Positions 25,268 through 53,616 of a stretch of 64,000 nt of DNA are shown here, piece by piece. Both the position numbers and the translations under genes were made by a program. Source of the DNA: Paraphysomonas bandaiensis (lineage: Eukaryota; Protista; Chrysophyceae); the NCBI GenBank assembly GCA_965644295.1, contig CBFFRP010000053.1, positions 1-64,000 on the forward strand. The letters are read 5' to 3'. The notes beneath the pieces are model-generated. The model saw nothing but the letters and a program-made list of their open reading frames with translations, was not told where the DNA came from and made no database searches. Position 1 is the stretch's first letter. Each line of letters opens with the position of its first letter.

Positions 25268-28200
25268 ATGCTGATCCATGTTATAAGGATTTTGTGCATA
25301 CTATTGTGCTGTTTAGGTATAGTATGATATGATCGACTTGCTGTATATCATATATATGTACCTTCATAGGGAGTGATTATGCGGCTGAGGTATATACTTT
25401 AGAAGTTATTGTCGCACCTGCAGGAGCAGTTGGTGGTGAAATCTTCTCTGTTCAGCCTCAGATAGCTGTCGTTGATTCAGATGGTGTATTAGCTGTGGAT
25501 TTAGATGGCTATGTGTATGCTGAAATGGGGAACTCTCCGACGGGCGAAGAGTCCTTATATATAGGATCATGCGACTTGTCTGGCTGTGGCGTAGAAGTAT
25601 ATAAGGATAACGCGTTTGCAGTACTAGAGAACGGAGTTGCAGTATTCGAGGTGAGTTGGTAGTATCCTTTGTTCTGCTTTTCACGTTTGTGTAGGATTTG
25701 CAAATTCGCACCGCAGGGAGTGGATATACGTTAAAATTTGTCGCCGTAACATCGACTGGGATTCCATTTGCATTCACGTTTTCCGAAACATTCGATGTCG
25801 AAGTGGGGGAAGCATATAGTCTTGATTATATTGACTACCTCGGACAAGTCCATGGCGGATTGCCATTTGAAATTCAACCGTCAGTCAGAATAATAGACAG
25901 AGGGGGAAATACGATTAACAGTATTAATACTGGTACAGTTGTAGTTGAACTAGTAAGACAGCCTGAATATGTGCAAACGCAATTGCTGCCAGCATCTAAT
26001 TTGAATGCTGCATTTGAGGGCGGTGTCGCAACATTTTCAGGGCTCTATATCAACGAAGCAGGCACTTCATATCAAATGGGATTCTCGACTGATATGGTGA
26101 GTTTGCTGCCTATCTATAATTTTGTTGAATCGTTTAGTACCTTCTTCATCTAATTATTTTAGTGATGTACTCAAGTAACACACCTGATGCTAACACTAGG
26201 ATCTTTGATCCTTTCTATCTTCATGTGATGCTAATATAACTTACACAGGTATTAAATGGCACAAATACGGTTTATTCAGGAAATTTTACTGTAGCTGTGG
26301 GTGCTCCAGCTATGCTAACATTTGTGGGCGATTTCGCTGCAGAACCTATTCAATCTGGAGAATTTTTTCCTAACCCCCCTATACTTCAAATAAGGGACGC
26401 TGGTGGAAATATGCTTGTCTTGGACAGTTGGTCGAAAGTACGAGTTAGTATAGAGGATAATGCAGCCAATAGTGTTCTAGCCCCTGTGGAACATACTACT
26501 ACAATTGCTGATCGAGGTGTTGTTCGTTTTTCAGCTATACGACTCGTAGGAGGCTATGCGACGGACTTTCGGTTGAAGTTTTCGTTATACAAATTCAATG
26601 CATTTACACTCAAGCATGATGTCACACCTGTTGCAGAGGTTGTATCGGGTTTATTTGAAGTTGCATTAGGGCGACCCAGAAAAGTGTCTTCTGTTAAGCC
26701 GAGTGACTACTCGTGGGCTGGTAATCAACCTTTCGACCAACAGCCTGTTTTAGCACTGATGGACTACTCCAACAACGTGATAAAGGTAGATTCAAAAAGC
26801 AATATGACAGCCAATATTGTCTCGTCACTATCGGCGAATTTTAAACGACTGGTGGTTGATACTTCGAATGCAAATGCAACTGAAGTATTATCTGTGGAAG
26901 TCGATCTGTTAAACGGCACCTATGGAGCTGGCGAGCAGATTGATGTATACGTGGAATTCGAGTATGAAGTTTGGGTCAGCTTGTTTAATGTGTCGCTGCC
27001 TTTGGAGAACTCATCGCTGCCTTACATAACCCTTAACATCAATACAACAAGTGGATATGCTACTGCATCGCTCAATACTAAGTTCTCTTACGAGAAAACA
27101 CGCTTCCTTGTTTTTACTTACATAGTACAGCCGATGGATGCAACTTTGTATGAATTGGGCCCGCTAAACACGTCAACGGCCTTTGTTGTCGTGACAAGTG
27201 ACACTAGCATTATTGATGGCAATGGAAATACTGTAGTCGGCGAGCTCCCTTCTAGTCGTCCTGATTTTGGGAAACAAATCTATATTGATACCTCAACTCC
27301 TTATGTCGTTGGTCTTGAAAGTGACACGAGTAGCGGTGAATATGGATCAGGAGAAGAAATTTTTATACGTGTGACCTACAACTTCCCTGTTTATGTTACA
27401 GGAAGTCCATATTTGACTTTGGCGATAACGAACAAATCTAACCCCGTGCAGGACACAACCCGTGACATACCATACTATGATCTCGATGATGACGATTACA
27501 GCGTTCTATTTTTGTACACTGTTGGTTTGGAGGATGACACAGTAGATCTCCAGCTTGCTAATAGCTCGATTCAAGTCGCATATGACAATGTATCCCAAAT
27601 TTTGCGGCGATCAACATTTCCTATTACACCTGTCAATTTTACTTTAAGTCCTCAACATATATCTGCCTTCGACAGTAACTATGATATTGTGATAGATACC
27701 ACAGCTCCTAGATTAAATACGACCTATGGACTGCAAACTACCACCCAGGACGGATGGTATTATCCTGGGGACGTAATCGATTTATCTATTTCGTTTGATA
27801 AAGAAGTTGCCCTTGGTCCAGGTATTAGTATTGCTTTACTGCTTGATGTTGGAGGTACGAAGCAGGTTGGATCGGCGACTATTACAATGTTGGGGAGTGA
27901 CAATAAAACTCTATATTTTGAATATGTAGTTACTGAAGGTACAAATACGAGTGCATTGGATATTTTTCCTATCGATACAATGGCTATTCATGAATTTGGA
28001 GACAGAAACTACATACGGAGAAGGTCCACTATTCCGACCAAAGATGCCAATTTGAGCACGGCTGACATTGCCATACATCATGGTAATTCGCTTACTGGAA
28101 ATCACGCGATTGGAGTGTTTGGTTTTCCTCCAGTCGTCACTGATGTTTCAGCTTATGCTCTCAATTCTACCGGTCAGAGTGTCATTACTATATATCCTGG

Positions 28201-31200
28201 TGACACAGTCTGGGTCAATATCACTTTCAATGCACCTGTTGTAGCCACCTGTGATCCTGTACTTGTCATTCAAACTACTACAACATTTCGAAATGCGGCA
28301 CTTGTTGATGGTAATGAAACTTCACGCTTGACATTTGCTTACATAGGCGAGTTGGGCGATGAAAGTCCCACTGGCTTTTATTATCGTCATCTCCCAAATG
28401 CCCTGTGCTCGGAAGAGACCTGTAGTGCCAATGCAAACCCATCATGTAAAATATATGCACACTCTATGGATCCATCAGTGGAGATCAAATATATTATGCC
28501 GTGGAGGGGTAGAAACAAGAAACTTGGTATGAGAGTTACTTCTGATATCGTTATTTCACCTTCCCACTCTATGGGAAATGAAAGAAATACAAGCGTTGTG
28601 TCTGCAGCAATTTTGCATAATGATGGAGAAGTTGGCACTGGAACACCAATTTATCTATCTCTGACATTCACAGATGACGTTTTTGTGACATCGAAAAAAC
28701 CTTATTTGTATCTTAATACAGGACGTTTTGTGAACTATTTTGGAGGCAGTGGTACCAAAACTTTGTCGTTCTTGTATTACGTTAATGATGGGGATGATGT
28801 GAATCATTTAGATGTTGCGAACGTTCCTGGTACGTCCTCTACCGTGGCATGTAACAACACATGCTCACTAGTGAACCGACTTGGGGAGATCGTTAATACC
28901 ACAACAATTGGAATAGCTGTCAGCGAAAATGTTTCTATTGATACCTCACAGCCTGTGGTGGTTGATGTGTGGTCAAATTCTACAACTTCACCATACGACT
29001 CGTGGTATGCTGCGGGACAGTCTATCTTTATCTTTGTTGAATTCGACAAGCCAGTATATGTTACAACCGATGCAATTGCCCCTCAGCTTAGAATGCAGCT
29101 TAACACGAATGAAAATAGGTATGCATTGTTCTCACGTGAGAATAGTTCCGATTTTGTGTTGGCATTTGAGCTCATCGTTGAATATGGTGATTATACTGAG
29201 AATCTGGAGTACGATGGTGTGGATGCTTTGGTTACTCCCCATGCACTGTCTAAAATTTTTCGAGCCGCTCCCTATGTGCATACGGAAGTGAACTATACGT
29301 TGCCTGCGCCTGTCCCATTAGCACCTGGGGGTCACACTATTTCCATTAACGCTAGCACTGTGCCCTCTGTAGTGGAAGTTACGTCCACATCACCCGATGG
29401 TCGGTATGCTACTGGAGATGTAATTGATATTTATGTCCACTTCACACACTATGTTGTGGTAGAGGGAAACCCGTATATAAATTTAAATTTTGGAGATCAC
29501 GTTGGTCGGGCCTACTACTCAACTCGAGATGGAACTGATGCATCTAAAGATATTCTATTTCAATACACGGTTGCAAGTGGAGATTATTCTCATGACTTAG
29601 ACTATGTGGATGTTTTTTCCCTTCGTCGAGCGTATACACCAGTAGCCGACTTGGGAAGCATTTTGCAGGCCTCTACTAATCCTATAGTAAATTCATCGCT
29701 TACACTGCCTAAGCAGGGCACGGAAGGTTCACTGTCTTTTAATTCTGATATTATTGTTGATGGCCGCCAGCCTTACATGACGAGTTTGTCATTTGTAAAC
29801 CCTGCTGAAACGATTTACGAAGTTAGAGACGTCATTCAAATTGAAATGAACTTTTCCGCGCCTGTGTTTGTGGAAGGAACTCCATATATTGTTCTTGAGA
29901 CAGGAACGCATAACAGGTTTGCCTATTATGTGTCAGGCACGAACTCGTCATCGTTGTTGTTTGAGTATGCCCCACAACCTGGTGATATGACCAATAAGCT
30001 AGACTACGCTTTTGACCGTGTAGCGATTCGTTCGTGTGCTGAATCTTTCAATGTGAGGGGTGAAGATGGAAAAGGTGCAATATTAGCTCACTCTGAGAAT
30101 CCTACTCAAGAAGCCCATATTCACTTAAATCCTCTTCGTGGTGTCTTGATGGGCACTACTACTGTCCCTGCTCTGAGTGGAATATATTACTATTCTAATC
30201 TTACTCTGAATAAGCAAGGACCAGACTATGAAATTCGCTATACCTCGACTCCAGAAGCTGAAAACCACACCGTGTTGTCAACAACTGAACCACTTTTCAA
30301 TTCATTCTCGAATGAATATGAATTGCGACCAATGGCCATGGAGTCTGGAGATCGAGTTGGATGGTCAGTTGCGACTGATGGGGAAGTATCTGTACTTGGT
30401 GCGCCTTTCACCAATTTGATTGTAAAAGATGTACAAACAGTTACAACAGGAGTTAGTCACGGGACAAAACTCTCGGCAGTTCAAGAAGTACAGCTGCTTC
30501 GAGTGGAGGTGGATCGTGCCCCTGAGATTCAGAGTTTCTATACCACTGCGGACGTGTACCAGACTGTAGATGGAACATTTACCATAAATTACGGCTTACT
30601 AGGTCCAACGAGACCGATCCCTGCCAACGCTAATGCTGAAATGATAGAAGTGGCGTTGATGACAGATATACCCAAACTTGGAGTTGTGTCGGTGTCTCGG
30701 ATTCCCTATATATACTGCGCCTGTTATAATGCCTTCACCTGGAACATAACGTTCCATGACTTAGATAGAGGCGTCGTCCACCCATTGGTTTTTGATGGCT
30801 CAGGATTAACTGGAGGAGGGGTGGCAATTCATGGCCCAACAACAGTGCAAAACTCATCATATATTGGTGGAACATTTACGCTGTTATCTGACGACGACAA
30901 GGAAACTGATCCAATTTCTTTTGACGTTGACGATGATGGTCTGATTGAAGCATTGGCAAGCATAGATATTGAAGCTGTTGAGGTTCAAATCAGCCCGACG
31001 AACACTGCGGGTAGTCGAACTTGGACAATCACGTTCGGCGCGGTTAATGGTTCATATGAGATACCTACATTGAGAAGTAATGCCAGTGGAATAACTGGTG
31101 GTGAGGCAACAGTATGGCATACAACTGCCAGACCAGGCCGACATGGACCACCGACTGATGATAGTATCAGTGGTATATCGGGATATTTTATGCTTGAGTG

Positions 31201-34200
31201 GAGAGGAAATGTTACGGATAAGATAATGTATAATGCGAGTGCAGATTTTATGGAATCTGCTTTAGAAGCACTCCCGAATATAGAAGATGTCTCTGTTGAA
31301 CGAATGGTTTCTTCCGATAAAGTAGGATATACTTGGAAGATTACTCTGAATCGAGTGTACTATAACACTCCACGAGGATACGAACTTGATGACCACGGAC
31401 CTTTTGATGCTATAATTGCTCATAATCATCTCATTGGAACTAACACCTCCATTACCATTGGGAGTAAAAGTAACAGTGTGGTTAGGCTCTATGGTGAGGA
31501 GGTGCGTGGGCTTTATGGTAATCAATCCGGTGCTGTTTATGTGTTCCAACGAGAGATAGATGATGCCGACTGTTGGATTGAAACTAGTACAATTACTGCA
31601 AATGACACAGATTCGTCAGATCAATTTGGCAGCAGTGTGTCTATTTACGGTGACTATATCGCAATAGGTGCTGTAGGAGCAGAAACTATTGGTGTCCCTG
31701 AAATTCAATCAATATTTTGCTCTGCGGAAGCAGGTTTCTTTCAATTGGGGTTTCGTGGATGGACAACAAGTGCTATTCCGCATAATGTCACTCGAGATGA
31801 TTTGATTTATGCCATCCAAGGCGATATCGGATCTATGCACTCCATTTCTATTGCTGATTGGGGTGTTGGTGGGTTGTGTGACAACAACACTGCTGTTATT
31901 ACATTTCATTCTCCAACCGATGGTCACGCTGTTATGTTTGGCGAGGACACCGGAGCTGATCTAGAACTGCTTGAGGTGACCGCCCAATCATTAACCAATT
32001 CAACTGGCAATGCTGGTACAATTGAAATCAATGAAATTCAAGCTGGAACTCGAAGTGCTCATGGGGAAAATGCTGATGGATTGCAGACTGGATCGGCCTA
32101 CGTGTTCAGGGCGGTCGCGGATTGCTATGATTACGAACTTGTCCAGTTTTGCAATCGTAAGAAATGGGTTCAAGAAGCTCAATTCTTTCCGACGGAGCCA
32201 CTTGGACACGAGAAGTTTGGTGCGTCCATATCTGCTTATGCAGACAGGATTGCTGTTGGTGCACCTGGAACCCTTGGAGGCGAAGGAGCTGTCTATGTCT
32301 ACGAATACAAGTACGACATAGATTCGTGGTTTCGCGTTGGAAAATACACAGCCAGCGTATGGGTTCCTGAGTTGAACGACGAATTTGGATATGACGTTGC
32401 ATTGCTGGATGATACACTCGTTGTTGGTACTCCTGGAAGGAATAATAATACTGGTATCGTATTTATATTTCGCTATGCTAGAGGAGTATTTGTAGCCACT
32501 CAAGAGTTATATCTTCCGCCTGATTTGTATCGCACTGAAGAAGGAGATCGCTTTGGATGTAGTGTTGCCATAGATGGGGACCTCATTGTTGTTGGTGCCT
32601 GTGGATATGATGATTCGACAATATATCTTGGTCAGAATCCGAGTAAAGTCGAACCAGATACAGGTGCTGCATTCGTCTTCAGGCGAGAGAGTAAGGCAAC
32701 TGATTTTGAATTTGACCAGCAGCTAATACCGTCCAACGTTCGTCGTTTGGACAGGTTTGGACATGATGTCTCAATTCATAAAAACACTATTGTCGTCAGT
32801 GCTGTGGAAAATATGTTGGAAGGTCTCGTGCCGTCTCGACCGATCATGGAAGTCAAAACTAGTGCGGACTACAATCAAGAACCGTGTGGCAATTATTTTC
32901 AATTAAAATGGGTCAGTACTAATGAAACTGGCGAATGGGAACAGCGAACAACCCGATTAATTAAGAAAGATGCGTCAGATCTAGAGTTGCGGCTTATCCT
33001 GGAGGAAGATTTAGGAACCGGACCACTTAGTGTTGTACGCTCTTTCAAGGATATATATGATGGTGGGTACGTCTGGACAGTAACGTTCCTTAGTGAATCG
33101 GTAAACGATGTGGCTCCTTTGGAACCTGTAAATGATGGAACATTAACAGGAACGAACGCTAAAGTAACCGTCACAGTTATTAACGACACTCCCCCAATTA
33201 AGCGTGGGAATGCTCACATTTTTACACGGGAGAGTCCACGTGACATAGATTTTGAGGAGCAGGTTTATTTGTTTCCATTTAAGTATCAGCGTATTGATCG
33301 TTGTGGATGGGCTGTGTCGATTCGAGATGATTATGTGCTCATGGGTTGTCCAAACCGAGACTTCTTCATACCAAATCAAAACAGTGGAGCAGGGTATATG
33401 TTCAAGTTAGACTTTTTGAATCTAGAATTTGCGGATTTTGAGCCAACGGTTGTGGAAGGTAACGAATTAGGTATAGAAGTGGTACCCAATGAGCGTGAAT
33501 CAATGGTTGATGATGTGCTGTACTTCATTGCCACGCTTGATCGAAATGCCTTTTCTCGTCGACAGACGCTCATTTCTAACCTCTACGGATTGCAGAAACG
33601 AAAAGAAGTATTTGAATTCGGGAGAACAGCAGTTGATATTTCAGACACAGCTGGTACTGCTATGGCTCGATCCCAGTATTATGGATCCACACAACGAGAG
33701 CATGTGTGGGTTGATGGTGTGTATGACTTCAGAGGGCTATCTGATTATGTTCCAATCGACGTGCCACGTGCCTATTTGCTGGAATATTCAAACGACACCG
33801 AATACGTTACAACAACTCCAGATACAATACTTGAAAATTTGGACGAGACATTTACAATGATTCTGCACGCTCCAGGCTATTGGCCGAGTATTCTCGGCAG
33901 ACTCACATCTTTGGCTACCATTGAGGACGATTGGGATGGGTACGTTGATGTGAATGGTACGACGTATTTTCAATACGACAAACTGTACGGTGATGTTGAT
34001 GTTGATGGATGTGAAATCGGCATATCTATGGATATCGAGAGCGATATTGATGTGGTTGTCAGTGGTTGCCCTCGCAGTACTGTTGATGGAGTGGAGAATG
34101 CTGGTAGTGTGTTCTTATACAAACAGGTACTTGGGCACTGGGCAAGGTTGGCAACGATTGTTTCGCCATCACCATATGAGGGTGGGTTATTTGGAGATGC

Positions 34201-37070
34201 GGTTGCCATAGACACGGCATACGGGCGGAATACCTCCACAGTAGTGGTCGGTGAACCTGGTATATTTGCGGCTCATGTATTTGTATCGTCACACCCAAAT
34301 ACTAATTGGACATACGATACGAATCTTACCGTCGATGTTGAGTTAGTTGTTCAACACAGGTTCGCTGTACAAGGAACTCTTGATTTGTATGGTGATATTG
34401 TGTTGATCGGTGCACCAGGCATAGAAACGATGTTTTTGTTTACTCGCCGGTTCGATCTCAACACATCCAGTTGGGTTTGGAGCAGTGCAAAGGCTATTCA
34501 ATCAGCTGATTACGATTATGATCTGGTGTTCTCTACAATTTTTCTGCATCGACAAGAATTTGGAACTTCAGTATCAATCTCGGAGAGAACCATTGCAGTC
34601 GGATCCCCTTTTGCGGATTACGATAAAATTGGTTCTGATAATATTGAAGTTGATTGGTTTACGGAGGGAACGGACATTCATGGTATGAGTCGGGGTAAGG
34701 TTTATTTGTTCACAAGTGAACCTGCTGTTCAAAATATTACCATATACTCATATCACCAAATAAGTGTTGGGACATTTAAGTTATCTCTATCGTACCGTGG
34801 AATAACTACTAATTCGAGTCAAATACCTTTCAACGAAACCGCTGAAAGTCTTAAATATATCTTGGAAGAGTTAGAGAATATTGACTTAATTACTACATCC
34901 AAAGATGAAGGGCGCACGCATGATTTTGCTCAAGGTGACTACGGTTACTATTACTCCTGGCAAGTGACATTTTTATCGGAGTATCAGGACCCCCCACTTC
35001 TGGTTCCACAGTTCAATGACACCGGCTGTGAGGATTGTGAGCGTTTTGATGTGAATTACGATAACTCGTCCTTTCGTATTGTGGTTACTCAAGTACGCCA
35101 GTATGAAGACTGGAAGCGAAGCCATGAGTTATCTGCTAGGGATCAGCGGCGGGGCGATCGGTTTGGCACTTCTGTGGTTGTTGATGGTGATACCATAGCG
35201 GTTGGTGCGGTTCATTCTGCAGCTGTTGTGACAACGACGTGGGATTTTGAGGCCGGAGTTTTGCAAGGCTGGACGACCACAGGAACTGCTTTTGATTTTC
35301 AGCCGACGTATGGTGATAACTCATACTACCATGCTATATATCGGGAAAAAACAGATAATATATATAACAAACGCGGTCGCCCAATGCGATCGCAATTGCG
35401 TGGTAGATACTATGTGGGCACATACGAAAAACGCCCTGGAGATTCCACCGATTATCGCGCTGCCGATCCCAATTATCCACAAGGTAATGTCCAAGGTGAC
35501 AATCCTGTAGGAACCATGGAGAGCCAGGTGTTTATTATCCGAGGAGAAAAAATTTCTTTCCTTGTGGGTGGGGGGTGTGATTCGAATCTGGAGTATGTAG
35601 AACTTGTAGTGGATGGAGTGAGTGTGGCAAGAGAGACTGGACAATGTTCTGAGTCCATGAGACGCGTATATTTCGACGTCTCTTTATTTCATTTGCGCTC
35701 TGCATATATTAAAGTAGTTGATGCAGGTCGTGGTCCGTGGGGACATATTAGCGTTGATGACTTCCGGTTCGACTGGGACATTAAAGGGGGGCTTGTCAAT
35801 GATACCATGACGGGAAATGTTCGCGATATATTCGGAGGACAAGTGGAAACATCGCGTTCTGGAGCTGTCCATGTATTCCATCGTCATAACTCACAGTCTG
35901 CTGATGGCATGGACGTCACAAGTAACTGTACTGGACTAAAATCTGATTGCATATGGTCTGAAGTCGCCAAGTTAACTGCGTCCGATAAGCGACCCAGTGA
36001 TCGGTTTGGATCAAGTGTGGCATTGAATGAGAAGAGTGGCGTCATTGCTGTTGGTGCACCATACACTTCTCTGACTGGTTTTTATAAGGAAACTCCGAGC
36101 CTACACCCACATATAGAAGGTGATATCAGTACTACTTACGGATTACACTTTCCTGTATTGAGTCAAAACGAAACTTTATTTATGCACAGAAATACATATA
36201 CTTCACAGCCTTCTGGATCTTACGGAGTCATGTACTTGCGCAACCAGTCTGGTATTTTTCCTGATGTTAAAGCTTACGAAGAAACCGGAGCTGTTTATGT
36301 GTACACTGTCAGACATGCTGTCATCGACCACCGAGATGTTATTTCCGTATCAGATAACTGGAAAACCACAGAAACGGCCAAAATACAACCACCAGATGGA
36401 TTTGCAAGAGACCACTTTGGTATCTCGGTGGTCTTAAGTGGAAGTCTTTTGGCCATCGGGTCACATGGCAACGATGGTCAAGATCTGGACACTGGGGCAA
36501 TATATCTATATCGCGCTGGGTTTGCTGCTGTTTCATTTTCAGAGGTATGAGGTTTCGTGTGTATTGCGTTTCCGTGTCATTTACCATACATCTTTGTTTG
36601 GCTGTTTACAGGCTGTATTCAAAGTATTTGAAAGCTTCGATCGTCAATATGTCACGGTTACAATTCTGCGGGATACGTCGGTTTACGATGATGTCCTTGT
36701 GCTTGAGTACTCCACGTCCGATTTAACTGCTGAAGGTGTAGATAGTAATAAGTATGAAGAATGCCTTCGACTTCCACCTATGCAACGAGGCCCTGCGAAG
36801 TGTGGAGATTACGAACAGACATCCGGGGAAATGACTATTGCCGCTGGGGATGACAGAGGAACTTTCACGGTTGGCCTGGTGGACGATTTATGCAAAGAGA
36901 AGTTCGTCGAGTTTATTCAGGTGCTGTGAACAGTTTTAGAGAGTTAGCAGTTTTACGCATTTGTGCAGGTCACCATTTCTGTCCCCGGATCAGCGGCACT
37001 TCAAGGAGAATTAATGTCAGCGAAAATACGAATAGATGATGATGATTTCTTTGGAGAACAATATTGTTAA
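25268..37070 (+). CDS. Giant (roughly 3,800 aa) secreted protein: Ig-like repeats, FG-GAP (integrin-alpha-like) repeats, EVQ/EIQ beta-sandwich repeats, Calx-beta; 6 exons
   Basis: Signal peptide MLIHVIRILCILLCCLG at 25268. Exons join the ORFs at 25698, 26297 (3417 aa) and 36438. Repeated Y..G..I.I...F...V.V.G.P.L.L units; many FG.SV.I.GD...VGAP...G.VYVF units; C-terminal YSTSDLTA...GDYEQTSG...DD...E.F...IRIDDDD. Stop at 37068-37070; no TM segment seen. Confidence 0.85.
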
Positions 37071-47484: not shown

Positions 47485-50400
47485 ATGAGTCTGCAATATC
47501 TGAAAAGTGCGGAAATATTAGCAGTATGAGACATGCTGTGTATTCATATGCATTAAGAGGTTAGTGAGAGTGCATTATATATACGCATATTAGCTTCAGG
47601 ATATCAGGGTATGCAACTTCATTTCATATGGATTTATTAGCTCTTCAGACTGCTGCAGATGCTACCCTTGAGGTGTTAAAGCCTCTGAATGGGGCATCTG
47701 AGAAGGTTAGTACTATACATACATACATACAGTACATGTATGTATATATAGAGATATATATACATATATACACATATAACATCTATGATATAGAATAAAT
47801 TACTTGTGGAAGAGATAGAGAAATTGATAGTTTCTTTATATCTAGCAAAAGATTCAACATATGAGCAGAAACTAGTCCATGTTGTCGACCCATTAATTGA
47901 TATACTTCGAAGCACAGAAGATAAAGTAAGAGATGCTATATATGTGTTATTGATTATAGTGTTTTTATTGTTATTTTTTTGGATTTTGAAGGTAAAAATG
48001 AAACTTCGTGAGATTGATGCAATTGTTGCATCAACTAGATCTCAAGTTGTGCAAAAGTTGGTTGTAATCAGTGAAGTATCTGGTGTATCAGTCGAGGGGG
48101 ATCGGGAGACGGAAAGAGACGTGTATGCTAACCACGCTGCTGATGCTGCCAGGGAAGCGGAGATGGAACAGTGGCGGGCAGTCCCCTCTAAACTTGCAGC
48201 AGTAGTGCAAACGCCAGGGTTTCAGACTGATAGGAGTTCTGCCTTGGAGCAACAAGCAAAGGAAAGTACAGGTAGTGGCTCAGAAGAAAATCTTTGGCCA
48301 ATTATAGTGCTACCGGAAAGAAATCAACACTTCTATTGTGATCGGGATTATCTCCCACACCTTTGTGAAAGTGTGTGGGGTGGGGAAGAAGAAATCGTTG
48401 TGCATCCCCGGGGACCAGACCGGCGTGTACCACGCTGTGTCGCCGTGCTTGGTGAGGAAGCGGGTTTGGGAAAGTCGCAACTCGTGCGGGAATTCGCTCA
48501 TCGTATATGTTCCTTAGAAACTGATGCCAATGTTCCTGCCTATCAGTTCATTGGATGGGTATGCGCAGCGGATGAGGGTAGTCTCCTAACTTCATATCGC
48601 CGCCTTGCCATCGCTATACGTGCAGCCGACCCACAGTTTTGCCGGCTCTCATCTGTTGCAATAGAGGCTCTGAAAAAGAAAGCGCTAATCGATGCAGTTA
48701 ATGGGTGGTTGGCAGATCTTCCAGTGCCATGGCTACTGATCGTTGACGACGTAGACACGGAGGAAATGCTGTTCACTTGCTCCTTTCCAACTTGCAGAAT
48801 GGTCACTGCGGCCGGTGCTGGCGTAATATTCACAAGTCGGAATGTCGATATGCCAAGGCGATGGTCGAGTTTACTGCAGGATCGTTTGCATCCCGGTGTT
48901 TGGGAGGAGGAGCGTGGACATGACATCGTTGGACTCAGAGTGATTACTGTTTCACCTTTTACAGAGGAGGACAGCTGGAAGCTTTGTCACGAAATCTTGG
49001 GACAGGACATGGACTATGGTATAGAGGAAGAAGAGGAAAGAAAGCGTGGGACCAGTGAGGGAGCTGAGGAGCGATATGACCCCAAACAACTCAAGTTACA
49101 GATTCAGAAGCTAACGGATACTCTGCATGGGGCGCCTGCAGCTTTGCATCAGGCCTACCGCGCCTGTCTAGAGGTATATCGACACAGGCGGATGCTGAGA
49201 CGACAGGGAGGACGAGGAGCCCTCCCACAAACTATTCCAGTTTCGTATGCTTCTAGGGTACGGGAGTACATCCATTGGATTACAGAATTTGACCGAGCAG
49301 CAGAGAGGGAGTTCCCAACGCAACCCGTGACGGCAGGTGCGTACAAGGCCTTCTTGGCAGCCCAGGCGGTTGCCTGCGAAAAAGCTGGAGGGCGACCTCT
49401 TGCAATCAACAGGTCACTTGAGCTTTTAGCCTTCCTTTCTCCCAGCTGTATCGATGTGATGATGCTCAGCTCGTGGTTGCGACCCCCGAACACCCCTATT
49501 GTTGCATCGATTCAGAAAAAGTGGCGGCTACCGGTAGTTGGGGGCACTGATGCATCACGAACACGCTTACCCTTCCAAGATGCAGAATTTGAGATAGTTG
49601 TAGAGAGCGTATTCCCGGTAAATACAGAATTTGGCCAGCGGTTTACCTGGCGAGTACATCGTACATATGAACGCATTAGAGATGCGCATGATGCAATGAA
49701 AACCTCGTATTCGAATGACATGACATCTCGACGTTTTCCGACCGTATCTTTGCCTTACGGTGCATCTGACGAAGTCTTAGAAGATGCAGTCTCTCACCGA
49801 CGGGCAGAATTAGCTGCATTCCTTTCCTCGCTTGTCCAGTCTGAATGCTGGGGACGTATCTGTCGATCACCTCCTATGGCAGAATTATTGGGATTCACGG
49901 GCTTTGCGGCTACTTCTCACATGGAGACTGACTCCCATATATATCAGTCCCGGGTGCTGTTGGGGTCTGGAGATGCTTGCAATGCGACAACACCACTACC
50001 AACCAAAGACTCTGAAAGCTTTGAAAAGCGCCTTCTCCCTGCTTCTGCCGATCCTTTCTTGAAGCTAATAGACCCCCTCATTACACTGGGACTTTTGGAC
50101 GTATACATGAGCACCTGTGACGTATCTATTCGACCACCCTCAGATAAACAGACTAAATCTGGAGAGGATGCAGATGGAAAGATATCCCATAAAAATAAGC
50201 TTGATGAAATGGCTAATAAAAGGGTGTTGTGTGCCATGAGTAGGCAGGTACAAGTATTAGTCCGCTTATGGCTAAAAGCCAATGGTAGGCTTGAAGAGGT
50301 CGTAAATGATGTCACGAAGTTCATATACCTTGCGTTCAAAGCTGCACACACGAGGTACAAAAAGGAATGTCACTCACGTGATACTCCCTCCAATGCACGG

Positions 50401-53400
50401 CTTGCATGTGAGGAGCTTCTTCCTCATGCTTTGTGTGTTCTGTCTACTGCAGCTTCGTCGTTCGTCCCAGAATGCTTTGAATTATCATCTATGGTGTACC
50501 ACTACACTGCAAATGAAGGATTGTACAACGATGCCATATTCTGTGCTACCCGATGTATCGAGATCGTAAAAGATCGACCTGGACCCAGTGGACCGGGTGG
50601 TGAGCATGATGGACAGTGGCACAGCTACCTTGCTGATATGTTCTGTCGCGTGGAGCGGTGCGACGAAGCCCGGGCTCTCTACGAACATTCGTTGTCCATA
50701 TTCCGTCGAGCATGTGGAACCTGCCACCGACACACGCTTTCTGTCTTGGAAAGATTAGGACGTCTCTTGTACGAAATGGGAAAATATAAACACTCCACTA
50801 AAGTGTTGGAAGAAGCGCTGCAGATTTGTCGACAGTTGTACGGTAACGATGGCACTGGTACCAGCACGAGCATACTTAATCTCGCTTTGGGGTCGAGTGT
50901 ACACAACAGTAGCACAGCAATAGCGAACAGCCTGCATATTGCTGACCGTATTAACCAGCTAGTGAAAGTAATGATGGTAGACTCACCTGATTCCGGTGTT
51001 GTGTCGCGCTGCTTAGATCTCAAACAGAATGAACTCGCAATTTTGCGAAAAGCGAAAGGAGAGTATTCAGCACACGTAGCGCGTTGTTTGAACTCTATTG
51101 GTGAGCTGGAGAGGCGTTTTGGAAGGACTGCAAAAGCTGTTGCCTATTTTGAGGACAGCCTCGATATATTATCCCGCTGTGTGGGGAAGGATAGCCTCGA
51201 GTTAGTTGCTCCACTTTTCAATCTTGCCATTGAGCAGCACACAGCTAGAAAATATTCCGATGCGAAACGACTTTACCTCCGGTCATTGCAGATCAAAGAG
51301 CTGGATGTAGCGTGTGGTGGTAAGGAAGATTCAGTGCTCGCCAGTATTCACGATAGTCTGGGACAGTTTTATAGTGATCAGGGGCAGTTCGAAGCTGCCC
51401 TTAGTCACTTACAGAAAGCTAAGGATATGTACCTAGACTTATTTGGAAGTGAAAACTACGAAGTAGCAATGTCACTCAATAACTTGGCGTATGCTTGGCA
51501 ACGCATGGGAGATAAGGACGTTGCTAGATCGTTTTACTCCCAGGCCCTGAAAACTTTGCGTAAGGTAGGCAGCCGGTCTGATGAAGACACGATTGCACGC
51601 ACTCAGAACGCTTTGGGAGAGCTGTGGATGGAAGTTGGAAATTACAAAGAGGCTCGCCCTCTTTTAATGGAAAGCCTGACATTACGGGTTAATCTTTATG
51701 GAGAAAAACATCGGGATACTGTAGTTGTGATGAAAAATCTTGCCCTACTTTCCTATTCGACAGGTGCTTTGGAGGAAGCTGCTCACGTCTGTAAAAATGC
51801 ACTGTCCATCCAGAGTGGCCTGGACGGGGGACAAAGTGAAGAAGTTGCAGAGTTGACCGCACAGCTGGCTGAGATAAAGCGCGTCATGGGAAAGTTGGAA
51901 GAGTCCAAGATTTTGTACAGAAGGTCGATTGCTCTATTTAAGCATGTGCATGGCCATAATCACCCTACCGTTGCATTGCAAATGAACAATCTCGCCTCTG
52001 TTTTCTTTGGGTTAGGTGCATACGACGAATGCGAAACACTGTATCTTGAGAGCAGGAAGATACTGACGCTTTACCACGGAAACGACCACATGTCGATCGC
52101 GGCCTCGATTAATAATCTCGCTGAACTATATAGGAAGCTTGGACGTAGTGGGAAGGCCTTGAGTCTGCATGAGGAGTGCAGGGAAATGCGAACCAGATTA
52201 GTAGGAAAAGACCACCCTGAGGTGGCAATATCATTAGCACAGGTTTCTGAAATCCTACGACAAAAAGGTTGTCTGGAGGAGGCTATAGTTACATCTAAAC
52301 AAGCACTTGAGATACGCATCAACACTTACGGCATGGAACACGTTGATGTCGTGAGTAGCTTGCGCGCGATAGCTAAACTGATGCAGTCAAAGGGTGACCT
52401 GAAAGAGGCACAGAGACTATTGAGGGATGCACTAGCTGTGAGACACAAATTGGACGCTACTGCAGCAGTATCAGGCGTCGGTGGTGATACTCTATCTGAT
52501 GGTCCAGAGTCACTGGAGACTGCGTCGGTAATAGATGAATTGTGTGGTGTGCTTGATGACGCTGACTTGGATGAGAAAGATAGCCTGTGTGAGCGGTGTT
52601 TACGCATCAGAAGAATGCATCTTGGAGAGGAACACTCGGATATTGCCAACTCTCTCACTGCTTTGGCGGACATACGTTCCAAGAAGAGGCAGTACCAAGA
52701 GGCTATCGAGTTTCATCGAATAGCTCGAGCTATCCGTGCGAAGTGCTATGGTGAAGGCAGTCCAGCTACAGTAGCTTCAATTGATCGCATTGCGGACTGT
52801 TTGCGGTCCCTTGGAAGGTTTGAAGAGGCCCGGAGTCTGTATGAACAGTGTGTTATCAGCCTACGCGCCTTTCACGATGAGTCCCACCCTGATGTGGCGG
52901 TTGCGTTGACCAAACTGGCGGCTATTCTTCAGCTGCTTGAAGAATACGATGCTGCGCTTAATGTAAACGAGAAGGCCCTGCGTATTAACAATAGGGTATT
53001 GGGGGAAGGGTCTGTAGCAGCTGCATCATCCCACAAACGTATAGCTGACATTCATCGGGCTCGAAAAAATGCCTCTGACGCAAAGTTGGCTTACATGAAG
53101 GCCCTCAATACTTACCGGTCTGTATTAGGACCCGAAACTATAGAGGCCGTACAAGCAATGGAAGGGCTGGTGTGGGCTTTGGACACTCTGGGTTGTGATG
53201 AAGAGGCGGCCGCATTAAGTTCGGAATGCATCGAACTCCATAAAAAGGTATTTGGTGAGGAACATATAGAGTTGGCCCGGGAACTCATTGCTGTAGCCAA
53301 GATGCTTCGGTCGCGTGGTAAATATGTGGAGGCATCGGATCACTTCAACCGAGCAATGAAGATCGGCATTGCTGTGCATGGAGAAGACCACGAAAACACT

Positions 53401-53616
53401 ATAGAGTCATTGCAAGGACTGGCCTGGATACTGGACGCTAGAGGCCTCAGTAACGAAGCCAGGCCGCTGCACGAGAAAGCCAGAGATATACGAAATAGAA
53501 TAGGTGGAAGCGAAAGGTCAGACGAGCTTTCAACTCCAGCCAAGGATGACCCCAAGCGGAATGCGGCAGCTTTATTAAGTAACTTGTCTTTGCTACTTAG
53601 CGAGAAAACTGAATGA
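47485..53616 (+). CDS. NLR-like STAND protein: N-terminal TM helix, NB-ARC-like NTPase, PX domain, long TPR array
   Basis: Three small 5' exons (MSLQYLKSAEILA|LQDIR|TAADATLEVLKPLNGASEK) splice in frame to the long ORF at 47794. TM AIYVLLIIVFLLLFFWIL. Walker A GEEAGLGKS (48451-48477), Walker B WLLIVDDVD, sensor VIFTSRN. PX-like WRVHRTYE...FP...RRAELAAFL...LLGF. Many kinesin-light-chain-type TPRs (G..HP.VA..LNNLA). Confidence 0.88.

Follow-up and report, generated by a model that had tools for sequence, protein, structure and literature searches.

What kind of protein is encoded by the single long open reading frame (ORF) at positions 47806–53616 (+ strand, 1,936 codons) of a 64-kb stretch of Paraphysomonas bandaiensis DNA (contig CBFFRP010000053.1, positions 1 to 64,000 of the forward strand; this whole stretch is referred to as the window), and what might a PX domain be doing in the middle of its NLR-like switch module? 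An original prediction, made from the DNA letters, had read the locus as a membrane-anchored NLR-like receptor, i.e., a transmembrane (TM) helix followed by an NB-ARC-like NTPase, a winged-helix domain (WHD) interrupted by a PX domain, and a long series of TPRs. The nested layout was recovered in profile and structure searches, whereas the TM helix turned out to be an intron. We consider it moderately probable that the gene encodes a soluble STAND switch of the NB-ARC/TPR kind, in which the PX domain lodged in the WHD serves as a ligand-docking module.

The domains predicted along the protein are given below. Residue numbers throughout are counted from 47806, i.e., from the first codon of the unspliced ORF; for residues encoded by exon 3, adding 8 gives the numbering of the spliced protein.

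48427–49191, + strand: NB-ARC-type nucleotide-binding domain (NBD) plus helical domain 1, from a profile-profile match to NB-ARC-bearing relatives
48451–48477, + strand: P-loop GEEAGLGKS, with GKS present
48733–48756, + strand: Walker B motif LLIVDDVD, within the NBD
49363–49488, + strand: first half of the WHD (helices 1 and 2, LELLAFLSPS...), from hhalign to DUF7779 and helices in the structural model
49489–49902, + strand: PX domain (residues 562–699 of the unspliced ORF), from fold searches and a profile match
49903–50040, + strand: linker after the PX domain, disordered (predicted local distance difference test, pLDDT, <50), with a mean pairwise identity of 11%
50041–50283, + strand: second half of the WHD (helix 3, then a wing hairpin whose loop is disordered, and M-S-R at the place of the MHD motif)
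50383–53505, + strand: TPR array of the TPR_12/TPR_10 type, about 1,000 aa

As for the PX fold, an AlphaFold model of residues 514–860 (m17cd1aec6845; 14 family sequences) had a pLDDT of 74.9 and a predicted template modelling score (pTM) of 0.72, with pLDDT values of 81–94 in the PX part. A first model, spanning residues 160–860 and based on four sequences, was too poor (pLDDT 57) and was not used. Exhaustive comparison by VIA-align superposed model residues 49–186 on the PX domain of SGK3/CISK (Z 12.9, root-mean-square deviation 2.5, 110 of 111 residues); the best 34 rows of this comparison were PX domains throughout, as were all of the top 50 matches of a Foldseek search against the Protein Data Bank (PDB). 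A shape search of the ESM atlas returned PX clusters alone, none of them combined with NB-ARC. On these structural matches the segment was classed as a PX fold, which is defined by a sheet of three strands and a helical subdomain bearing the PPK loop. At the sequence level, a profile of four PX segments matched the PX domain of KIF16B in the PDB (E 4e-6, 24–26% identity), followed by those of SNX16, PI3K-C2alpha and SGK3 with E-values of 0.2–1.2, which are insignificant on their own. The Pfam PX profile (PF00787) scored 14.7 bits on the whole protein (residues 611–680) and 18–19.2 bits on the excised segment, i.e., below the cut-off of 21.6, and individually matched three of the four family members found first and, later, six of 14 (E ≤ 0.01, best E 1.8e-7).

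The two flanks of the PX domain together matched the archaeal STAND protein with a TPR sensor 6mfv, which ranked first among the non-PX structures matched by the WHD part (93 residues, in a model range of 1–335 that spans the PX domain) but has no insert in its own WHD, and whose Z of 7.2 is not decisive alone. SmtB/BigR-type repressors were matched at a Z of about 7, and the WHDs of ZAR1, NRG1, Apaf-1 and Dark at a modest Z of 6.4–6.7. Because these WHD scores were modest, the nesting was also tested by sequence. When the intact family profile was aligned by hhalign with the DUF7779 WHD of ordinary NB-ARC-TPR proteins, only the first 31 columns aligned, whereas deletion of the PX and linker columns yielded an alignment over 98 columns that covered both halves (probability 87%, E 4.1e-6) and paired LELLAFLSPS with LLEVCSFLSPD and M-S-R-x-x-Q with the MHD-type IHRLVQ. 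Since the flanks align as one DUF7779 WHD once the PX domain is removed, profile and model evidence places the PX fold in the loop between helices 2 and 3 of the WHD. The N-terminal junction between both domains is tight and highly conserved (RPPNTP...KKWRLP). The original prediction had put the start of the winged helix at about 49418, the PX domain at about 49520–49900 and the rest of the winged helix behind it; the first WHD half was found at about 49417, the PX fold at 49489–49902, and the second half after the disordered linker, so that the proposed nesting is borne out by both the SGK3/CISK superposition and the rejoined flanks.

The kinship of the NTPase with NB-ARC rests on profile searches. 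A family profile of the NBD aligned by hhalign with the NB-ARC regions of relatives at a probability of 99.2% (E 7.9e-20, 189 columns), matching the P-loops and placing LLIVDDVD, FTSR and HGAPAAL opposite the WLLIxDN, IITTR and LPLAL of those relatives, i.e., their Walker B, sensor-1/RNBS-B and GLPL motifs. NCBIfam FxSxx_TPR, an NB-ARC-like TPR family, matched over the NTPase as well (E 2.4e-9). The Pfam NB-ARC profile (PF00931) was not reached by this protein, in which only AAA_16 matched weakly at the P-loop (E 0.017), and a PDB sequence search with a profile of the nucleotide-binding oligomerisation domain (NOD) module returned PX alone. A profile search of 1.84 billion representatives gave 1,055 matches at E ≤ 1e-3, only 25 of them at E ≤ 1e-10; in the distant matches the NBD alone was aligned, and those proteins bear Pfam NB-ARC, DUF7779 and TPR_10/12 domains, some also TIR or HET. 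P-loop residues G220, G222, K223 and S224 are invariant, and the motif was counted as a Walker A motif under the pattern [AG]xxxxGK[ST]; the first glycine of the loop is, atypically, replaced by Glu in this protein and by Ser in its orthologues. The Walker B motif carries DD in the window protein versus DN in the orthologues. Judged by these profiles and motifs, the NTPase is NB-ARC-like, as originally noticed, but divergent. Over the TPR array, Pfam matched TPR_12 (E 2.5e-127, 415.7 bits, 17 stretches), TPR_10 (E 1.4e-91, 298.7 bits) and TPR_NPHP3 (E 4.6e-69), in agreement with the roughly 1,000 residues of TPRs first reported.

The spliced gene model consists of three exons, together encoding a protein of about 1,944 aa.

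47628–47705, + strand: exon 1, 26 codons, start ATG at 47628; transcript contig X1 covers 47648–47703/5, joined to exon 2
47706–47793, + strand: intron 1, 88 nt, GT..AG; joint 47703->47792 (cut +2) in contig X1
47794–47925, + strand: exon 2, 44 codons, within a conserved N-terminal region; in contigs X1 and X2
47926–47991, + strand: intron 2, 66 nt, GT..AG, in frame, stop-free and T-rich; joint 47925->47992 in contigs X1 and X2
47992–53616, + strand: exon 3, 1,874 codons plus stop, containing every recognised domain

The TM helix of the original prediction (47935–47988) falls entirely inside intron 2, which is removed in the X1 and X2 transcript contigs. This intron has GTAAGA as its donor (after exonic AAA) and a pyrimidine tract plus AG as its acceptor. 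Moreover, the collinearity of the window with the orthologous loci L002 and L003 extends to either side of the TM segment but breaks down at the segment itself, where both loci have unrelated sequence and stop codons. Since transcripts join 47925 to 47992 and the orthologues have stops at the same place, the apparent helix is a read-through intron. The top Kyte-Doolittle mean over 19 aa is 1.55 for the spliced protein versus 2.93 for the unspliced ORF, and a hydropathy scan found no TM segment of about 20 aa left in the spliced protein. The protein is soluble and not transmembrane, and its description as membrane-anchored, for which the read-through intron had been the only candidate hydrophobic helix, has to be dropped. 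The pyrimidine tract of intron 2 translates to a perfect-looking 20-aa hydrophobic helix, and retention of the intron would insert a TM-like segment. The stop codons of the orthologues at this place make it unlikely that a TM isoform is conserved. For annotation, the case is a warning that a short in-frame T-rich intron can pass for a convincing TM helix.

Downstream of intron 2, the X1, X2 and X3 transcript contigs run joint-free from 47992 to at least 53399. Because of this uninterrupted coverage, the locus is one transcribed gene and the PX segment is retained in its mRNA, so that neither splicing out of the PX domain nor a split into separate genes, either of which would have undone the nested architecture, applies. 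Pieces of the mRNA were matched at at least 99% identity in poly(A) marine metatranscriptomes (X5). The coding GC content is about 47–51%, in AT-rich surroundings. At the 5′ end, ATG 47628 is the first in-frame ATG downstream of an in-frame stop, and the exon 1 peptide, including its Met, is kept upstream of exon 2 in the orthologous loci L002 and L004; a gene start at 47485, as first assumed, found no support. The identity of exon 2 amounts to 52–62% with L002 and L003, and is weaker with L004. The X3 contig stops at 47992 with a 27-nt loose end, only the last 12 or so bases of which match the end of exon 2, and for its first 15 bases both an assembly artefact and an alternative upstream exon are possible.

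The N-terminal stretch of about 150 aa, in which no effector domain had been recognised, likewise matched nothing known here: the PDB sequence search gave no match and the structure atlas no usable lead (best score 0.79). A sharply conserved motif, S-G-V-S-V-E-G-D-x-E-x-E-x-D, was observed in 47992–48123 (residues 63–106 of the unspliced ORF) without a known-domain match; G93, G98, D99, E103 and D105 of this N-terminal motif are invariant in six homologues.

How widely is this architecture shared? The three full-length homologues found first are 33–41% identical to the window protein, and have the PX-like block among their best-conserved parts. About 17 cluster representatives with the PX insert were found, and two genes in the 62.5-Mb genome of P. 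bandaiensis itself. The family takes two forms, i.e., a long one of about 1,600–2,070 aa (including the present gene) and a short one of about 1,235–1,350 aa, and each is represented once in this genome. The paralogue (C71:149509–153447, equivalent to L008:2509–6447, – strand) is a 1,313-aa ORF with the same NB-ARC/WHD[PX]/TPR layout, and its PX domain, at 22.3 bits, lies above the Pfam cut-off. In an NBD-only tree of 85 sequences, all 14 PX-bearing rows fell into one set (support of 96 in the Shimodaira–Hasegawa-like approximate likelihood ratio test, SH-aLRT), with the short form nested inside at 95; two further fragments in this set break off ahead of the WHD, so that their PX status could not be judged. 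The simplest reading of this tree would be one old insertion. Source annotations of the homologues go no further than ‘TPR repeat protein’.

Averaged over pairs of the four closest orthologues, identity is highest in the WHD halves (53–56%) and the PX domain (45%), and falls to 28% in the NBD. By this measure no other part of the protein is as well conserved as the PX domain and the WHD, and the better conservation of the PX domain than of the ATPase argues for a working ligand-docking module over a decoy. In the second WHD half, the MHD histidine is replaced by Ser or Asn across the long clade (M-S-R, at about 50236–50244), and is kept only in the divergent members P0011, P0015 and P0016. Loss of this histidine may mean altered ADP-dependent autoinhibition.

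Regarding the surroundings of the gene, an upstream ORF at 26297–36550 (+ strand, 3,417 codons) consists mostly of FG-GAP_2 repeats (Pfam E 1.1e-83, 8 stretches). The neighbours are this giant FG-GAP ORF and unassigned ORFs, with no NLR or paired helper gene adjoining. The 62.5-Mb genome as a whole is rich in phosphoinositide readers: PX was matched at least 59 times at E ≤ 0.1, and FYVE at least 47 times at E ≤ 0.001. FYVE-ankyrin ORFs are located on contigs C259 and C212, with an additional RabGAP-TBC fragment in the case of C212, and the two long FYVE ORFs that were examined are not NB-ARC proteins.

Which ligand, then, could such a PX domain dock? Its binding-site residues were read from an alignment of the family with six canonical PX domains from the same genome. 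Every human PX domain that binds phosphatidylinositol 3-phosphate (PtdIns3P or PI3P) has a sequential Arg-Tyr pair, the Lys of PxxPxK and an Arg in helix alpha2, and non-binders are without at least one of these (PMC6449406, Chandra et al. 2019). In the window protein, the canonical R-R-[YF] has become R-T-Y (R-[TSN]-[YF] throughout the long clade) and the PPxPxK loop reads FPTVS, with both the PxxP and the Lys absent; the aromatic residue and the helix-alpha2 Arg are retained, i.e., two of the four canonical PtdIns3P residues. R619, Y621 and R666 are what is left of the canonical site. Because the other two required residues are missing, the rule derived from human PX domains (PMC6449406) implies that canonical PtdIns3P binding by this PX domain is not to be expected, and the originally proposed tethering to endosomes or phagosomes through this lipid is weakened by the same substitutions. 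The short clade shows the reverse, with YRRY kept and the alpha2 Arg lost, as is also the case for the PX domain of the C71 paralogue. The divergent member P0015 is near-canonical (YRKY, FPPKR and RR).

In addition to the canonical pocket, PX domains can have a secondary site, made up of a His or Tyr in helix alpha1 and nearby basic residues, which binds di- and tri-phosphorylated phosphoinositides (PMC6449406). At the corresponding position of helix alpha1, the window PX domain carries a His, H628, with K632 nearby, and eight basic residues (K571, K572, R574, R612, R616, R619, K632 and R666) are invariant in the four closest orthologues. From these residues we infer that a secondary-site ligand would be a more highly phosphorylated or anionic lipid.

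Upon activation of STAND proteins, the WHD rotates off the NBD, as is established for Apaf-1 and plant NLRs. Since the WHD moves in this way, a PX domain lodged in it would be in a good position to bias the switch, or could itself be exposed or concealed by it. In the soluble switch that we favor, the PX domain would probably be a ligand-docking module that is exposed or hidden by the nucleotide switch, or whose ligand helps to release that switch. Its likeliest ligand would not be PtdIns3P, and might instead be a higher-phosphorylated or anionic lipid bound via the secondary site, or a peptide partner; that the ligand is indeed a lipid other than PtdIns3P is a plausible though still tentative part of this proposal. 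The TPR array would act as sensor or scaffold, and the N-terminal region of about 150 aa as output domain. A more specific version, in which the protein is a lipid-gated or lipid-reporting STAND switch whose docking and nucleotide state are mechanically coupled via the WHD, is conceivable but rather unlikely. If true, it would be an unreported way to tie an NLR-like oligomeriser to a membrane, conserved in a marine protist clade and in two old paralogue lines.

Several points count against the proposed ligand-docking switch. The coupling between the PX domain and the switch is drawn by analogy from the behaviour of the WHD in other STAND proteins. Likewise, the argument for the secondary site uses a sequence rule derived from human PX domains, and the alpha1 His on which it draws is absent in three long-clade members. 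Finally, the atypical P-loop (Glu or Ser for the first Gly) and the change of the MHD His to Ser or Asn may set the ATPase cycle apart from that of model NLRs.

Among the alternatives, a TM-anchored NLR-like receptor whose PX domain keeps it on endosomal or phagosomal membranes rich in PI3P has become very unlikely. In its favor are the genuine PX fold and the conservation of three pocket residues, namely the Arg at –2, the aromatic residue and the alpha2 Arg; moreover, P0015 keeps YRKY, FPPKR and the alpha2 Arg, suggesting that the ancestral domain was probably a lipid binder. However, the TM segment is a spliced-out intron, the 3-phosphate Arg beside the aromatic residue is Thr, and the Lys of PxxPxK is missing, while no human PX domain in which even one of the four residues was lacking bound PtdIns3P (PMC6449406). 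The lost lipid residues would in turn suit a bait that no longer needs lipid, i.e., an integrated decoy whose PX domain mimics host PX proteins targeted by pathogen effectors and in which effector binding activates the STAND switch, and an NLR-like layout with an extra domain is what such a decoy would look like. This explanation is nevertheless highly doubtful, given that the family is low-copy (two genes in 62.5 Mb) and monophyletic, that the insert predates the split of the two old paralogue clades, that the PX domain is more conserved than the NBD, and that no paired helper gene adjoins.

The PX domain might also have no external ligand and tune the switch by packing on the NOD or TPR parts, as an insert with a structural or autoinhibitory role. 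The disappearance of half of the canonical pocket would fit such a role, as would the tight and highly conserved N-terminal WHD junction and the pTM of 0.72 of the model, whereas the eight invariant basic residues suggest an anionic ligand and the C-terminal side is a long flexible tether; on balance we regard a ligand-less insert as unlikely. An immune role of the protein is possible but unsupported. The family is low-copy and conserved, its TPRs lie in one exon, its neighbours are uninformative and its N-terminus matches nothing known.

The protein shares the order of NBD, helical domain, WHD and TPR_10/12 array with the NB-ARC-TPR STAND proteins of fungi, brown algae and bacteria (for the Ectocarpus family, PMC3341825), but differs from them by the PX domain nested in the WHD, by not reaching Pfam NB-ARC, by its low copy number, and by the Glu or Ser at the first P-loop Gly and the Ser or Asn at the MHD His. 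In contrast to Ectocarpus, the TPR array is contained in one exon, with no sign of the exon-per-repeat shuffling seen there (PMC3341825). The PX domains of SGK3/CISK (1xtn, 1xte and 6edx; Z 12.0–12.9 for 1xtn and 1xte) and of KIF16B/SNX23 (2v14 and 6ee0; Z 10.4, and the best sequence match) have the same fold; those are terminal modules with all four PtdIns3P residues, whereas the present one is nested and carries R-T-Y and FPTVS.

To our knowledge, plant receptors mostly have their integrated domains at either end of the protein or between other domains, and not within the WHD. The plant NLRs with integrated domains (NLR-IDs), such as Pik-1 and RGA5 with their HMA domains (PMC9528084), likewise combine a non-canonical domain with an NB-ARC receptor-like protein, but the present family has a TPR instead of a leucine-rich repeat (LRR) sensor, and is low-copy and conserved rather than diversifying. 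PX did not come up in the NLR papers retrieved. Among other NLRs, a polybasic region of NLRP3 binds phosphatidylinositol 4-phosphate (PI4P) and the helper NLRs ADR1 and NRG1 bind anionic lipids, and these proteins use short basic patches or N-terminal domains to do so. The present protein would share their dependence on an anionic surface, but through a complete lipid-reader fold, with putative lipid binding, located in the moving WHD. A full-text literature search found no published combination of a PX domain with NB-ARC, NACHT or STAND, and a survey from 2010 that covers PX and FYVE architectures records NB-ARC in combination with FYVE only, not with PX; apart from its TM part, which itself fails, the layout therefore still appears not to have been described before.

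Protist NLR-like STAND proteins are almost unstudied, and how such switches are recruited to membranes is being actively investigated for the NLRs of animals and plants. This family offers a concrete and testable case of domain nesting in a NOD module, and may be a natural example of ligand or membrane docking coupled to a nucleotide switch.

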